Shown: positions 3,450 to 49,900 of the stretch, piece by piece
Layout: each line of letters opens with the position of its first letter
Numbering within the stretch: the stretch's first letter is position 1
NCBI RefSeq assembly: GCF_000143415.4
Contig: NW_003314301.1
Coordinates: 464,745-528,744, forward strand
Direction of reading: 5' to 3'
DNA from: Selaginella moellendorffii
Lineage: Eukaryota; Plantae; Lycopodiophyta
Length of the DNA: 64,000 bases
Position numbers and translations under genes: made by a program
Notes under the pieces: model-generated
Database searches by the model: none
Told to the model about the DNA's origin: nothing
The model's input: only the letters and a program-made list of their open reading frames with translations

Positions 3450-4560
3450 TAAGGTACATGGTCTCATGATGCTGCTTGAGGGGACATGCTTGCCTAATGC
3501 TCAAATTCTCGTAGCTACATTCAAGAAAAGTTATGGCCTTAGAGAAAGGAATGGCTCTTCTTTGGACATGAGACTGGACTCCAAAGTGTTCATGACAAGA
3601 TCTTTGATAGATCTGTACATGAAGTGTGGCACTATGGATGGAAAGTTTTCGAGAAGACACCAGGGCGGGATATGGTTTTATGGAGCTTGTCTACGTCTCA
3701 AATGGTGAAGAAGAGGGAGCTCTAGAGCTCATCAAGTTTGTGGAGGTGGATGATGATGTGATCGGTTGACCATTCCCTCCGGACTCAATCTCTGTGCATG
3801 CTTGGGACCCAGAGGAAAATGGAGAGAGGCATGGCATTCCACTTTCAAGCTTACCATGCCGGCTGGAATGACTACGAGGTGGCTCGCGGCCTTGTGGTGA
3901 TGTACGTGAAGTGTGGGAGCATGGGGGATGCTCGCCGAGAGAGATGATGTCACAGCATGGAACTCGATGGTCTTGGGCTATGCCGAGAACAAGCAAGCAG
4001 TGCTGTTCTTGGAGCTCTTTCGAGAGATTCCTCCTCAAGTTTTGGACGCTCACAGATTGGCTGCTGCTCTCGAGGCTTGTGGAAGCCTGGCGTCTGTGGA
4101 ACCGGGCAAAGCCACTCATGCTCTAGCTTGCCGCTTGGGGATGGAAGTATCTCTCATCGTTGGGACTAGTTTGGTTGACTTCTATGGCAAGTGTGGAAGC
4201 ATGGTGGACACTCGACTGATTTTTTATGGGATCTTTCCCAAGAAGCTAGCGGCCTGGACGGCTTCCATGGAAGGCTATGGCCGTCAAGGAAGCTCCAAGC
4301 TTGTGATGGAGCTTCTTTGTGGAATGGAAGAGGAGGGCTTTCGACCGGACGCTAAAACTCTGGCTAGCGTTATCAGCAGATGTGATTCCTTCCCAGGATT
4401 ATTCCCTGCGCATGGTGGAGCCAATGAATTACATGCCGCAGTAGACATGGTTAGCTCGATGGAAAGTGTTAGCAACGCTATGTTGGTGAGAATTATCCTA
4501 GATGCTTGTAAGGTGGAAGAATCTTCAGGTGGCATTCAAGCGTTTGATGGATTTGGATGA
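3450..4560 (+). pseudogene. PLS-class pentatricopeptide repeat (PPR) gene relic
   Basis: PPR motifs SLIDLYMKCG, AWNSMVLGYAEN, GTSLVDFYGKCGSMVDTRLIF and EGFRPDAKT are split over ORFs 3382-3708 and 3913-4560 with frameshifts. Confidence 0.75.
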
Positions 4561-4655
4561 GTTTGATTCAGTGGCTTATGTACTATTTGCATCCAGCTAT
4601 GATTAAGTGCAAATAATTCACTTAGTTATTCTTTCTTCGTAAGAACGTGTCTGCT

Positions 4656-5588
4656 CTAAATGGAGCGAGCGGCAAAGGTTAGAGCTCCAAGACCAATGGT
4701 GATAGCAATGGGGCCTCCATACTTGGTGCCAAACTCTGCCATATTCACGCAAGAGTCGAGCATGGAGTAGAGTAGAGTGTGCTTCTGGCGATGTTGTAAA
4801 GAGCACGAACTGGGGCGAGCAGTGACTGGTATGCATATGGGAGGTATTCGCTTGCACCAAGAGCATTGAACAGAGAATCTAAGAACCATTCGCTGTGAAC
4901 AGAGGCCACTACAAGAATGTCGCCCGAGAGTGTCAAGGGGTTGTAGAGTCCCAGCTTGTCAACCTTTGAGATCTCTGCGTATATCAAGATTGTGTTATTA
5001 CAGAACATTAGGATGTGTGGTTTTTTGTACCTGTGATTGGTGAGGCTCCAGAGATTGTGGACAGGCTATCTCCAACTTTGAGATCAGCAGCTCGCTTGTA
5101 AATTGTCTCTCCTTTCGTATTAACTGGGACAAAATGACCGGCTGTAAGCTCCAAGGTGTTGGCTTTGGTCTTGACTTGCACGAATTCAGAAACAACATCT
5201 AGATCCTTGTGACCAAATGCGTAGATATCCGAAAATGAGTTATTTCCAACAGCAACCTGTAGAAACTTATTAATCATATGAAGCAAAGTGGATTACTAGC
5301 TAGGATCTTGCCTTATCTCCAATCTTAAGTTCCTTCATGGTCTTCATTTCCCCACTGTACATTGAACCAAGATAGATATTGCATGTACTTAGCACGGTGT
5401 AATTTGTAGAGGATAACTTTATTACCTGGAAAGCAATCACTACATATTCCATTGTTACATGTGAGTGCAACTAGCCCCTGAGCTGTGCAATCAGCACTAG
5501 TGTTGCACTTCACTATATTAATAGCAAACACGGTGGAAAACAATCCAAGAAGAGAGATCACAGCAAACACAGCAGCTGGAGAAGCCAT
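4656..5588 (-). pseudogene. Secreted Hedgehog-type Hint (Hog) domain gene with apparent lesions
   Basis: Signal peptide, a small 4-Cys domain, then CFP, MKELKIGDKV, LELTAGHFV, RAADLKVGD, GLYNPLTLSG and VASVHS (Hog/Hint blocks), followed by an SRR-like helix and a hydrophobic tail. Exons approx 5588-5426, ~5378-5312, 5256-5031, 4974-4656. Frameshifts near 5362 and ~4780; acceptor degenerate near 5379. Confidence 0.8.
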
Positions 5589-5823
5589 TGACTTTCAAGT
5601 ATACTTAACGAAACACTAAAATCATTGGCCATGCACTGCTTAAATAGGATGAACTTAAACGCAATTACACCCAAGTTCAACAATGAAAAACATAATGGTG
5701 AGTAAAAATTCATTGAAAGCATACAAAGTAAATTATAGGTTTTTTACTATGATAGAAATCACAACATTTAGAGAGAATTTTAGTCCTCGGTAGCCCTTCT
5801 AGAAGAGAAATGCTTGACGAACT

Positions 5824-8800
5824 TCACTGGTTCCCTCTACCACCCCTGCCTCTGCCGCCCTTGTTAGTTTTCGGTGCTCGGACAACCCGGTTCCTCAGTG
5901 TTTCTGGGGACGAAGGAGACGCAGCACTCCGCTTTCTCTCCTTAGCTCTTTCCCGGGCCCTCTCGTTCAAGTTTATAGTGGTGCTTGTCACTGCTGGTGC
6001 TGGTGGTGTTCCTCCTCCTGTTGGTGGTGTTGTTACTCCTCCTGTTACTGCTCCTGGATTTGGCCTTTCAGCTTCAGCCATCCCGGCAGCCTCTCCTTGC
6101 TCGAAAGAAGTCTCGGCCGCCATCTCGGTGGAAGTCGTCTCCTGCGGGGTGTCACCTGCGTCTTTGCCAAGCTCTTCCTGCTCTTTGACGTCTTCCATCT
6201 CAAACTCTCCTTCTGTTCCAGCCTCCTCCACAGTTCCAAGTGAAATCTCGCCGTCTTCCACGTCTAGACTCATCCCGTTGTCGGTCTCGTTAGTCGTCGC
6301 TTCTCCTACCTCTGTTGCCTCCTTTTGCTCCGGTTCCACGTCCACTTGGAACTCGAACATTACAGGCGACTTCGGCTCAGAGATCTCAATGACTGGCTCG
6401 TCCGCTGTCCCGGAAGAACTTCCCTGCGCTAGCTGCGGCTCTGGCGACTTCTCCTTGAGCTTGCTGCCACTTCCATCAAAGTCATCTAGCAAAGACTCCG
6501 GACGAGAGAAACGGACCCGCCTCTGAGGAGCGGCAATGTCTGCGGCAAGATCAGCGCCCTCCAGCGACGGTAACTCCTGCTGCTCTTCATCAAGTTCCTG
6601 GAGCTTTGGTTCCTCCACTGCAGTCGTAGTAGCAGCGTCCACTTCTGGCTCTGTGGCTGGCTCGTCGTTCCTGGCCTTCTTTAAAGGTGGCAAGACTTCG
6701 CTTCTAGAGTCTTGCTGCTGTATGGTCTCGGTGTCCAAGCTCTCTGACGACGTTCTCTTGTGACCAGCAGGCACCGCAATCTCCATAGGTATTGCCACTA
6801 GTGCGTTCATGTCATTCTCGACCACCGCGTCAGGAACTCGAGCAGTCTCGCCCTCGGCCTCGGAAGTCCCTTCGCCAGCCGCGTCCAACGAGGATTCCAC
6901 AGCTTCCGCTCCAGACTCGGATTGGCTGGAAGTCTCCATCCTAGGCCGGATTATACGCCTCCCAGAGCGACGAGTTTGGGTTTGGAATTTCTGGAACACA
7001 CAGACGCAATTGAGAATGCCTTCCTTCAACTTAAAAATAATGTGTACCTCTTTCTCGATGATACTGGCGCGAAGCGCTTGCATTGCCCTCAACTTATCAT
7101 CCAGAATAGGTGCTGATGGCGGCCGTTGTACAGCTCTTGGGAACGGAACCGACGGCCTCACTATGCTTAGATGCATGGGAACTGGAGGAGTCGGAGTCGG
7201 AGTTGGAGCCGGAGCTGGAGCCGAAGCCGGAGCTAGCACAGCCGGAGGAGGCACGTTGACAACTGGTGGTGTTGTAGAAGTTTCGTGCTCAGGGGCTGCG
7301 ACAACTGGTGCTGGAGTAAGCTCGGCAGCCATATCATTCAGCTGTTCAACTGTCGCAGAAAAAGTTTTAGAGCTCGCCTCCGCGTTTATGATGGTGGTGC
7401 TAGTCTCAGCTCCTTGGATTTGCTGCAACTGTACCACGGCATTCACGAGACCTGGATAAGTAAGAAAAATTACCTGTCGTAGTTGCTCGTTTTCTTGTTT
7501 CACTGCCTGCAGGTCTTCGAGAAATCGTTGTTTTTCCTGAAAACCACTATGAGCGTTCAGCTGTGGAGAAAAGCAGCTTACCGTGGTTGCTTTTTGCAGC
7601 AGCTCCATCAAAGCCGTCCTGTCTTTATCGATTTTAGATTTCGATTTATCCCTTTCTTTCTCCAAGGTTTTCTCGAGCGTCTAGACAAGAAAAATGTTAA
7701 AACACAACAGTAGGAAAAGGAAAGTAACCCACTTGAATTCTTGAGTCTTTCTCGATCGCCTCTCGTTGAGCTAGCTCGTAACGTGCAACGTTTTCTCTTT
7801 GAGCTTGTTCTAACCGCAATGCAGACTCCCTTTGGCATGCCTCGAGTGCTTCTTGATGCACCGGCAACTTGCCGGACTTGAGTTCTTCAATTTCTTTTTG
7901 CATCACTTCTCTGTCCTTCTCATATTTCCGCTGTTTCATCAAGACTTGGGTTAAAGAAATCAGGCAAGGTGAGCCTCACCTTTGTTTGGGTCAAGATCTT
8001 CCTGTTTCTCTCGACTTCGGCTCTCAGAGACGCCTGAAGAAACATATCAGTTAACGCCAACCACATGACTTTCAAATCACTCACCTCTAATTTTACAGCA
8101 TCTTGAAACCTTCGCTCTAATTCTGCTTGAGTCTCGGTTCTTAGAGCAAGCTCCTGTTCATACTTTGCGATGGTTTCGCGCCACATCGACGTCTCTGAGC
8201 CAATTCGTTCCTGCTTTTGACCATGTAAAGCCAGTTTGATGTAAAGTACGAAGTTATACCTGTGTCTGTACCAGCAAAGCCTTCACTCTTTCATAATCAT
8301 CGACATCTAGAGACTTGTACTTCTCCAACATCTGTACCCCCACATCAATCGTAGTTTAAAAAAAGCGCAAGTACTAACCTGAGTACATCTTTGTTCCCAG
8401 CGACGAGTTTCGGCTTTTGAGACTTCCACTTCTTGTGCACGGGCGTGAAGTTCGAGTTGCAATTCCGTTACAGTTCTTTTAAGGGATTCATTCTCCTCTT
8501 CAAGTTTTTGAAACCTCCCTTGCAATTCCTGAAAATACAGAAGTAAAAAAGGAGCCTGCAACATTGATAGCTCTACCTTATTCTCATCAAGGACTCTCTT
8601 AATTTCCTCCTGAAGCTGCCCATTGTTGCCGCGCAAGATATTCGTCTCCATAACCTGTGAACTAACGTTTAGTGTAGCAAGCGTAGCTTGAGCCAATACC
8701 TGTGCCTGAAGCGCCCGAAATTCCTCATCAGTATACACACTAGCACGAAGATTTTCATGATGTTGACGTAGTTTCGTTTGAGCTTCTTCCGCAGAACGGG

Positions 8801-46900: not shown

Positions 46901-49900
46901 CAGAACGCTCCCGCATTTTACAAAGGATGACTACGGCCCCGAGAGTAGGGGGTTCGTCGAAAATTCTTATCTACGGGGTCTCACACCGCAGGAGTTCTAC
47001 TTTCACGCCATGGGAGGTCGAGAGGGTCTTATCGATACAGCAGTGAAGACTTCGGAGACAGGTTACATCCAAAGACGTCTAGTGAAGGCAATGGAAGACG
47101 TGATGGTGAAATACGATGGCACAGTTCGGAATTCGCTGGGGGACGTTATACAGTTCTTATACGGAGAAGATGGCATGGACGCAGTTTGGATTGAATCACA
47201 GCGTCTCGACTCCATCAAAATGAAGAAGAAGGATTTTGATATGACTTACAAGTTCGAGGTGGATAACGAGAACTGGAATCCGGACTACATGGCCAGCGAC
47301 TGTGCAGAAGATATTAAGACCATCCAGGAGATTCGCAACGTGTTTGATGCCGAGGTCCAGAAGCTTGAAGCCGATCGCAAGCAACTCGGTCTGGAGATTG
47401 CGACTTCTGGCGACCCGCAGTGGCCCTTGCCGGTCAATCTGAAGCGTCTCATTTGGAACGCGCAGAAGATTTTCAAGATTGAAATGAAGAAGCCATCGGA
47501 CATGCATCCTATGGAGATTGTGGAAGCAGTGGACAAGCTGCAGGAGAAGCTACTGGTGGTGCCTGGTGACGACCCGATCAGTATCGAAGCTCAGAAGAAT
47601 GCCACCTTGTTCTTCAACTGTCTACTTCGTAGCACGTTTGCCAGCAAGCGTGTTCTCAAGGAGTACAGGTTGACGAAGGAGGCCTTTGAGTGGGTCATTG
47701 GAGAGATCGAGACGCGGTTCTTGCAGTCACTGGTGGCACCCGGGGAGATGATCGGGTGCGTGGCTGCTCAATCCATCGGCGAGCCGGCTACACAGATGAC
47801 GCTGAATACTTTCCACTATGCTGGTGTCAGTGCGAAGAACGTCACTCTCGGTGTTCCCCGGCTGAGGGAGATTATTAACGTGGCCAAGAAGATCAAGACG
47901 CCGTCGCTGTATGTTCACTTGAAGCCTGAAGTAAGCAAGGAGAAGGAGAGGGCCAAGAATGTGCAGTGCGCGCTCGAGTACACGACGCTGAGAAGTGTCA
48001 CGCAGGCGACGGAGATTTGGTATGATCCAGATCCGATGAGCACCATCATTGAGGAGGACGTGGAGTTTGTCAAGTCTTACTACGAGATGCCAGACGAAGA
48101 TGTCACTCCGGACAAGATCTCTCCCTGGCTACTGCGTATTGAGCTCAATCGCGAGATGATGGTTGACAAGAAACTCAGCATGGCAGACATCGCCGAGAAG
48201 ATCAACCTCGAGTTTGTGGACGACTTGACGTGCATCTTCAACGACGACAACGCAGAGAAGCTGATCCTGCGGGTCCGGATCATGAATGACGACGTCAGCA
48301 AGGGTGGCGAAGTAGACCAGTCGGACGACGACGTCTTCCTGAAGAAGATCGAGAGCAACATGCTCACGGAGATGGCGTTGCGAGGGATCCCTGACATCCA
48401 CAAGGTGTTTATCAGGGAGCACAAAAGGCAGAGGTTTGACGAGCATGAGGGCTTCAAGGCCGAGACCGAGTGGATGCTCGACACCGAGGGCGTCAACATG
48501 CTGGCTGTTATGTGCAACGAAGACGTGGACGCGACGAGGACGGTCAGCAACCATCTGATCGAAGTCATTGAGGTGCTGGGCATCGAGGCCGTCAGGCAAG
48601 CTCTCCTCAAGGAGCTCAGGGAAGTCATATCCTTCGACGGCTCCTACGTCAACTACAGGCACCTGGCCATCCTGTGCGACGTCATGACTTACCGGGGCCA
48701 CCTCATGGCGATCACTCGCCACGGTATCAACCGCAACGACACCGGCCCGATGATGCGCTGCTCGTTCGAAGAGACGGTGGACATCCTCCTGGACGCGGCG
48801 GTGTTTGCTGAGGCGGACCATCTCAGGGGCGTCACCGAAAACATCATGCTCGGGCAGCTAGCTCCCATCGGGACGGGCGACTTCGGGCTGCTGCTCAACG
48901 ACAAGATGCTGGAGCACGCGATCGAGCTGCAGCTCCCGAGCTACATGGAGACGGCCGACTTTGGCCTGGGGGGCGTGACTGGAACTCCGCACCACGAAGG
49001 GATGATGTCCCCGAGCTATCTGCTGAGTCCCAACTTGCGAGCCTCGCCAATCACGGACGCACAGTTCTCGCCATATGTTGGTGGCATCACATTCTNNNNN
49101 NNNNNNNNNNNNNNNNNNNNNNNNNNNNNNNNNNNNNNNNNNNNNNNNNNNNNNNNNNNNNNNNNNNNNNNNNNNNNNNNNNNNNNNNNNNNNNNTCGTC
49201 GCCGACTTACAGTCCATCATCGCCAGCTTACAGTCCGGCCTCTCCGGCGTACAGCCCGAGCTCTCCAGGCTACAGCCCGGCATCGCCCGCGTACTCTCCA
49301 ACGAGTCCATCTTACAGCCCGACGTCGCCGAGCTACAGTCCCACTTCTCCGTCCTACTCTCCGACCTCTCCATCGTACTCTCCAACTTCGCCGTCCTACT
49401 CCCCGACCTCTCCATCGTACTCTCCAACCTCGCCATCTTACTCTCCGACGTCTCCTTCCTATTCTCCGACTTCGCCATCTTATTCTCCCACTTCTCCGTC
49501 CTACAGTCCCACCTCTCCCTCGTACTCTCCCACCTCGCCGTCCTACAGCCCGACGTCTCCCTCGTACTCCCCCACCTCGCCATCCTACTCTCCCACTTCG
49601 CCTTCTTACAGTCCGACGTCTCCGAGCTATAGCCCGACGTCCCCGAGCTACAGCCCGACCTCTCCGAGCTACAGCCCCACGTCTCCGTCTTACAGCCCGA
49701 CGTCACCGGCTTACAGCCCGACTTCTCCGTCTTACAGCCCGACGTCGCCTTCTTACAGCCCGACTTCTCCTTCCTACAGCCCGACTTCGCCTGCTTATAG
49801 TCCGACGTCGCCGGCATACAGTCCCTCGTCTCACACTTACAGTCCCAGCAGTCTCAAGTATAGCTCCGCGAGCCCAAGCTACAGGTAAGTTACGAGGATT

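Follow-up and report, generated by a model that had tools for sequence, protein, structure and literature searches.

A probable decaying duplicate of a Hog gene with a four-cysteine mini-cargo in the genome of Selaginella moellendorffii

In animal Hedgehog proteins, Asp46 is the general base that activates the sterol hydroxyl, Thr69 and His72 constitute the TxxH motif of Drosophila HhC, and Cys143, in motif J, is required for the branched thioester. Replacement of Cys143 by either alanine or aspartate (C143A, C143D) abolishes autoprocessing in animal Hedgehog, whereas an engineered D46H Hedgehog still autoprocesses (PMC12054796; PDB 6TYY). Hog domains have been described in plants as well: an article of 2008 presented those of S. 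moellendorffii, S. lepidophylla and Physcomitrella, and remarked that the cysteine of motif J is replaced in them (Burglin 2008, PMC2362128). The first-pass annotation of the DNA studied here had called Hog-domain genes noted in some non-seed plants but little characterised; besides that article, the family is on record in RefSeq, under the names warthog protein 4/6. A literature search for plant Hog function after 2008 found nothing relevant.

The plant sequences of 2008 (pSm, pSl and pPp Hog) resemble the locus described here in species, in Hog type and in motifs J and K, and they differ from it in sharing a longer conserved upstream region (PMC2362128). A term search of the available text of the same article did not find the subfamily with a four-Cys mini-cargo that concerns us here. 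Compared with animal HhC (1AT0, 6TYY), the Selaginella proteins have in common the Gly-Cys-Phe junction, the TxxH motif, the Hint fold, the helical region with AP.R and a signal peptide. They differ in carrying His in place of Asp46 and Val in place of Cys143, and in possessing an extra C-terminal hydrophobic tail; moreover, where animal Hedgehog has a Hedge domain of 19 kDa, they have a cargo of about 30 residues.

We analysed a stretch of 64,000 nucleotides of S. moellendorffii DNA, referred to as the window, on whose minus strand a Hog relic of four exons extends from 5588 to 4656, with its ATG at 5588 and its stop codon at 4658-4656. With a probability of roughly 0.9, we take this relic to be a decaying and unannotated duplicate (a pseudogene) of an S. 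moellendorffii mini Hog gene with a four-Cys cargo, copied along with half of a PPR gene from the locus that holds the tandem genes L002A and L002B.

An exhaustive HMMER search with exon 3, together with word searches using the proteins P0001 and P0151, returned as close relatives only proteins of Selaginella moellendorffii, which bear the RefSeq names given above and are called SELMODRAFT_* by JGI. The nearest protein is P0001 (96% identical; SELMODRAFT_427238), from scaffold GL377654.1, which we denote L001. The nearest intact protein is P0151, a warthog protein 6 of 265 amino acids from scaffold GL377597.1, which we denote L002. This second scaffold contains the two tandem Hog genes, L002A and L002B, followed tail to tail by a gene for a PPR protein of 848 amino acids. 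The coding sequence of L002B is that of P0151, and its tandem neighbour is located at L002 3928-5015.

The gene structure was set by a four-way alignment in which the window was compared with L001 and both L002 genes; when its exons are joined, L002B encodes precisely the protein P0151. The exons of the window were searched singly, while the profile and structure work was performed on the natural intact paralog, P0151. In the relic, the parts follow one another in the order signal peptide, 29-residue four-Cys peptide, CFP nucleophile, Hint module, SRR-like helices and hydrophobic tail. After the signal peptide comes INIVKCNTSADCTAQGLVALTCNNGICSD, and then CFP, so that the signal peptide, the four-Cys peptide and CFP are indeed read on the minus strand from the ATG as first annotated; the LTAGH and GLYNPLT blocks and the hydrophobic C-terminal tail, named in the same annotation, are all found as well. 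The cysteines of the peptide are spaced C-x5-C-x9-C-x4-C. The blocks of the relic are spread over three reading frames, with the hydrophobic C-terminal tail in a separate frame (Table 1).

Table 1. Coordinates of the Hog relic and the adjoining PPR fragment, in window positions.
Feature	Position	Strand	Evidence or comment
PPR gene fragment, frameshifted	3466..4603	+	tail to tail with the Hog relic; tblastn with the 848-aa L002 PPR protein
TATA-like box TATTTAAG	5639..5646	-	in the ~90-nt upstream stretch common to intact paralogs (four-way alignment)
Exon 1	5426..5588	-	start codon, signal peptide, four-Cys peptide, D-CFP-G; alignment
Nucleophile Cys codon	5435-5433	-	Cys-Phe-Pro = 5435-5427
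Intron 1	5368..5425	-	GT donor 5425-5424; acceptor AG changed to TG, mutated base 5369
Exon 2 remnant (..MYSGEMKTMKELKIGDK)	5312..5367	-	four-way alignment
Intron 2	5257..5311	-	GC-AG in 4/4 copies aligned
Exon 3, Hint core	5031..5256	-	75-residue block, Pfam Hint, HhC alignment; 96% identical to P0001
AFGH, His at the Hedgehog Asp46 position	5211-5209	-	alignment to HhC
LTAGH (TxxH)	Thr 5145-5143, His 5136-5134	-	alignment to HhC
Intron 3	4975..5030	-	GT-AG; joint 4974/5031 (CT..AC on the + strand) in a paralog RNA contig
Exon 4	4656..4974	-	GLYNPLT, VASVHS strand, SRR-like motif K (LAPVR), out-of-frame tail

Two exons of the relic match the Pfam Hint profile: exon 3 with E 3.2e-4 over model positions 47-93, and exon 4, collinear with it, with E 0.011 over positions 132-162. 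Because these exons are fragments, their scores lie below the cut-off of 29.7 bits; the intact P0151 gives 93.3 bits and E 2.1e-26 against the same profile (PF01079). The DNA of the relic is 85-88% identical to two intact, annotated Hint genes, which places the match far beyond chance. The original proposal that this plant DNA contains a precursor gene of the Hedgehog-type Hint/Hog kind is supported. A search by tblastn with the exon pieces returned only the locus itself, and so the window contains no second Hog copy.

Intron 2 has a GC donor (AAG/GCAAGA) in all four gene copies, and is seen spliced in an RNA contig of a paralog; it is a conserved GC-AG intron.

The relic departs from its intact relatives at several places, beginning with the splice site at the 3' end of intron 1. 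The acceptor AG of the intact copies reads TG in the window, so that the acceptor was rightly called degenerate. We checked every AG in the intron-1 region, and no canonical in-frame acceptor remains among them. For example, a splice model that uses the acceptor GCTAAG at 5393-5388 together with a one-base repair fails, since splicing there loses the reading frame and soon meets a stop codon. The one-base repair itself, which had been proposed to yield CFPVSILVQMYSGEMK (CFPVSILVQ...), must also be abandoned: VSILVQ is a translation of the last bases of intron 1, and the intact exon 2 begins with GDAMVH. The true start of the intact Hint domain reads CFPGDAMVHMYSGE. As for the gap-free alignment with Hedgehog that was claimed for the repaired text, this is coincidental for that text, whereas the corresponding CFPGDAMVHMYSGEMKTMKELKIGDKV of the intact paralog does align gap-free with Shh.

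Several deletions accompany the loss of the acceptor. At the start of exon 2, the window lacks 12 nt in frame, which turns GDAMVH into G-S (DAMVH into S) and shortens the first Hint strand. In exon 1, an in-frame deletion of 6-9 nt is found at about 5440, and the residue preceding the nucleophile Cys is Asp (5438-5436), where the intact copies have Gly. A further in-frame deletion, of 9 nt at 4910/4911, removes VNN from the strand ILVNNVVASVH; it is shared with L001, and the strand that it shortens carries the position equivalent to Cys143. This is the deletion that had been annotated as some four residues before VASVHS; it is real, and amounts to three residues. Finally, 7 nt are missing within 4777-4764, between CTACT repeats, which shifts the frame and produces a premature stop (TGA 4747-4745) while leaving the hydrophobic tail out of frame; in its original frame, exon 4 ends with that tail and the stop TAG at 4658-4656. 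A reading of this last lesion as a 5-bp tandem duplication (CTCTA) is ruled out by the alignment, which shows the 7-nt deletion. Thus, where two frameshifts had been counted, the one before the tail stands, and the first lesion is instead a splice-site loss with an in-frame deletion. The 5' leader also shows a deletion of 10 nt that is private to the window, at about 5620.

Compared with P0151, the window copy lacks the intron-1 acceptor, 12, 9 and 6-9 nt of coding sequence whose loss preserves the frame, and 7 nt whose loss shifts it; it also has Asp before the Cys. As neither the 12-nt nor the 9-nt deletion disturbs the frame, they would not, alone, prove loss of function. The acceptor loss and the 7-nt deletion leave the window copy with no uninterrupted, spliceable reading frame. 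Considering that intron 1 is unspliceable in frame, that two Hint strands are shortened, that Asp precedes the Cys and that the tail is out of frame, we conclude that the window copy probably makes no functional Hog protein. The degeneracy of this copy, first noticed from its own letters, is borne out by comparison with the intact paralogs in its acceptor, in its frame and in the Gly before the Cys.

The origin of the relic can be read from its surroundings. Window positions 5669-3527 correspond to L002 5910-8245 at 85% identity, and this alignment begins about 90 nt upstream of the ATG, runs through the Hog gene and continues into the PPR gene, in its 3' half; the other tandem copy of L002 is 88.5% identical to the window. 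The PPR fragment of the window represents residues ~405-848 of the 848-aa protein. P0151 and its tandem neighbour have their exons and introns arranged as in the relic, with a GC-AG intron 2, and agree with it in signal peptide, four-Cys spacing, Hint domain, SRR-like region and tail; in L002, as in the window, PPR sequence is found tail to tail with Hog sequence. The two genes differ from the relic in being intact, annotated and transcribed. Together with the frameshifts of the PPR part, the alignment of the window to L002 indicates the duplication of a block, comprising the Hog gene and half of the PPR gene, which is now in decay. In the proposed sequence of events, the Hog gene would have been copied as one block with its ~90 nt of upstream DNA and with the neighbouring 3' half of a PPR gene from the present L002A/L002B locus, and the copy would then have lost its function.

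The scaffold L001 offers a second version of the same locus. Its order matches that of the window for 8.6 kb, and in the large gene next to the relic the two are about 99% identical when substitutions alone are counted. Judging from this collinearity, L001 is most likely the allele of the locus on the other haplotype, the alternative being a very recent segmental duplicate. Its Hog gene (5700-6900) is broken too. It has the 9-nt deletion and the Gly-to-Asp change in common with the window, and bears private lesions of its own: the ATG has become ATA, the peptide has a 10-nt deletion and two lost Cys, the tail contains two 1-nt indels and the stop is lost. L001 retains the intron-1 acceptor and the start of exon 2. 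By our alignment, the annotated 165-aa model of L001 (P0001) is an artefact of annotating a pseudogene, in which exon 1 starts in the wrong frame and exon 2 is skipped. The L001 version is independently confirmed by a contig of the public run X1, which over 4980-5577 differs from the window at 13 letters and 31 gap positions, where 14 and 31 are predicted from the alignment of the window with L001.

Ka/Ks between the window and L001 is 0.90. Between either relic and either intact gene it is 0.39-0.47, and between the intact L002A and L002B it is 0.52; the counts behind these ratios are small, amounting to about 30 differences. From their lesions, both alleles appear to be dead.

Whether any copy is transcribed can be judged from public runs. 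In the runs X6 and X11, which are guessed to be RNA, the listed contigs over 4730-5562 are only 93-96% alike to the window, and at positions such as 4862, 4867, 4928 and 5134 they read as the L002 genes do. Over 4815-5297, the X11 contig exceeds the window by 9 letters, and a 9-nt insertion relative to the window is present at 4910 in the DNA run X3. The RNA contigs of the paralog are spliced at introns 2 and 3, with the joint 5255/5311 having a slack of 3; intron 1 has been removed as well, since the contig beyond 5362 reads CFPGDAMVH joined to MYSGE. Thus an intact paralog is transcribed, and it is spliced as modelled. Among the RNA contigs listed, none has the window's own letters, although contigs drop rare variants, and the window copy is apparently silent.

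The contigs of run X3 break at GATC with GATCGATC-like ends (loose ends at 4224, 4414 and 4970), and their depth is very uneven. Owing to these Hi-C-like breaks and to the unevenness, the depth of X3 is unusable as a measure of copy number.

The transcripts bear directly on the possibility that the window holds a stand-alone peptide gene, in which exon 1 is read on into intron 1 (an 87-aa ORF, 5588..5325) and the product is secreted without any Hint domain. The start codon, the signal peptide, the four Cys and the TATA-like box are all intact in the window, as such a gene would require. Against this, no listed RNA contig carries the window letters, and the sole listed RNA contig over exon 1 (record 18 of X6) differs at 7 of 122 letters, as expected for a paralog. 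Furthermore, the start codon and two of the Cys are destroyed in L001, a point against the peptide being under selection here. We therefore regard a stand-alone peptide gene as very unlikely.

A working Hog gene would require that the lesions be assembly or sequencing errors, or that unusual splicing bypass them. The window version is found in no listed public run (its share of sampled words is at most 0.25); what the runs contain is the other allele (X1) or the paralogs (X3, X6 and X11). The lesions of the window therefore rest on the assembly and on those shared with L001. Moreover, splicing at the TG acceptor would give a product still in frame, CFPG-S-MYSGE. Nevertheless, the lesions are multi-base indels, unlike sequencing slips: five separate changes (of 7, 9, 9/6, 10 and 12 nt) are accompanied by point changes, and are not homopolymer slips. 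Two of the lesions are common to L001, which was both assembled and re-sequenced independently. There is no splice route round the 7-nt deletion, the Ka/Ks of the allele pair is about 0.9, and the PPR fragment next to the relic is likewise broken. We consider a working gene highly improbable, and retain the decaying duplicate as the explanation of the locus.

Intact paralogs of the same build, which the first-pass annotation had anticipated, do exist: P0151, its tandem neighbour in L002 and P0005, annotated and transcribed. We retrieved with exon 3 a set of 65 Hog-like proteins (A1), for which the organisms checked are Selaginella and one Coccomyxa. An AlphaFold2 model of P0151 built on the A1 alignment has a mean pLDDT of 85.7, with values above 95 in the Hint core. 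In this model, the Cys peptide forms a small helix and a hairpin (pLDDT about 70-76), six helices follow the Hint domain (190-264), and there is a terminal hydrophobic helix; over helices 190-245, pLDDT is 84-91 to about residue 230 and 67-79 beyond. The best matches among solved structures are the Drosophila HhC entries 6TYY and 1AT0, with a TM score by target of 0.86 and an rmsd of 2.1-2.2 over 145 residues; by E-value they rank above BIL domains and inteins. BIL domains reach a TM score of about 0.7, and the gp41-1 intein a similar score by target, with a far weaker E-value and 16% identity. The intact paralog thus models as a Hedgehog-type Hint. We discard as next to impossible a generic Hint of the intein, BIL or Vint type, because the weak secondary Pfam matches of P0151 to Vint, Intein_splicing and Hint_2 and the absence of the Hedgehog Cys143 stand against a score of 93 bits for PF01079 compared with at most 16 for these, a TM score of 0.86 to Hedgehog HhC compared with about 0.7 to BIL domains, a helical region after the Hint domain whose AP.R motif K aligns to the Shh SRR, the lack of a C-extein and of a terminal Asn, and the grouping of the plant sequences with Hog domains by Burglin (2008; PMC2362128).

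The positions that matter for Hedgehog chemistry are in part kept and in part replaced. At the nucleophile, the intact paralogs have Gly-Cys-Phe-Pro-Gly, while the window and L001 have Asp-Cys-Phe-Pro. The TxxH motif is kept (LTAGH in the window), with H120 invariant across A1 (n=65). Where Hedgehog has Asp46, the window, every Selaginella paralog and 65/65 of the A1 sequences have His (H95, in F-x-H-K). The position of Cys143, in motif J, is Val in the window and in P0151 (ASVHS), Thr, Ala or Ser in other paralogs, and mostly Thr in A1. Motif K (AP.R) is kept in the window as LAPVR; R214 is nearly invariant in A1, and there is a weak alignment to Shh 340-394. By this motif and alignment, the helical region that follows the Hint domain is SRR-like.

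Given His at the Asp46 position and Val at that of Cys143, sterol transfer by the intact paralogs is only a possibility. As D46H Hedgehog is active but C143A and C143D are not, the intact plant proteins may follow a simpler cleavage route, may perform hydrolysis only, or may not cleave at all. If they do cleave, we would expect the signal peptide to direct the precursor into the ER, where the Hint domain would carry out an N-to-S acyl shift at Gly53-Cys54. The thioester would then be resolved by water, or possibly by a sterol that the SRR-like region holds and His95 activates. The product set free would be a peptide of about 31 residues containing two disulfides, and the hydrophobic tail would keep the Hint-SRR part at the membrane. 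As far as the sequences can tell, self-release of the mini-peptide by intact family members is plausible, and the released peptide is possibly lipidated.

The cargo varies within the family. A four-Cys peptide is found in P0151, its tandem neighbour, P0005 and the window relic; P0002, P0154 and P0164 have a proline-rich cargo; and P0153, P0155 and P0156 have a vestigial cargo of 5-6 residues. Exon 1 of the window matches Pfam Nodulin_late (PF07127) with 25.1 bits and E 2.2e-5, not reaching the cut-off of 30.4. Residues 1-55 of P0151 give 23.7 bits, and the mature part alone gives 16-17 bits with E of about 0.01. Legume NCR peptides are comparable in that they consist of a signal peptide and a short peptide, with a Cys-rich part that aligns to Nodulin_late 27-54; their genes differ from the Selaginella Hog genes in being without a Hint domain. 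We treat the Nodulin_late match as a resemblance in Cys spacing, and not as a sign of kinship. A look-up of the N-terminal 56 residues in the ESM Atlas gave one match at 0.75, under the chance level.

A bolder reading of the intact paralogs (P0151, its neighbour and P0005) would make them the smallest-cargo Hog precursors known. These would release an NCR-like disulfide peptide of ~30 residues with a C-terminal phytosterol, by a two-step reaction that uses the His as base and proceeds without a Cys143 intermediate, and the rapid birth and death of copies, exemplified by the pseudogene pair described here, would represent turnover of the defence or signalling type. We think this reading unlikely; if it were true, the two-step chemistry would be simpler than that of animals.

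As an apparently dead copy, the locus itself carries little weight; it shows the Selaginella Hog family gaining and losing members. The relic also offers a natural catalogue of changes that become tolerable only when selection has ended, namely the change of the Gly before the nucleophile (Gly-1) to Asp and the shortened Hint strands. For the family, the question is whether Hedgehog-type chemistry serves a land plant in the release, and perhaps in the lipidation, of tiny Cys-rich peptides. With His for Asp46 and Val for Cys143, the intact paralogs constitute an informative natural variant for the study of the Hedgehog autoprocessing mechanism.

Elsewhere in the window, positions 49096-49195 are an assembly gap of 100 N. 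The neighbouring large gene (window 5700-7700; its product in L001 has 2058 amino acids) shows in-frame indels between samples in its repeat-rich part, for example of 9 nt at 6012, 18 nt at 7204 and 9 nt at 6145, and these are seen in DNA and RNA contigs alike.
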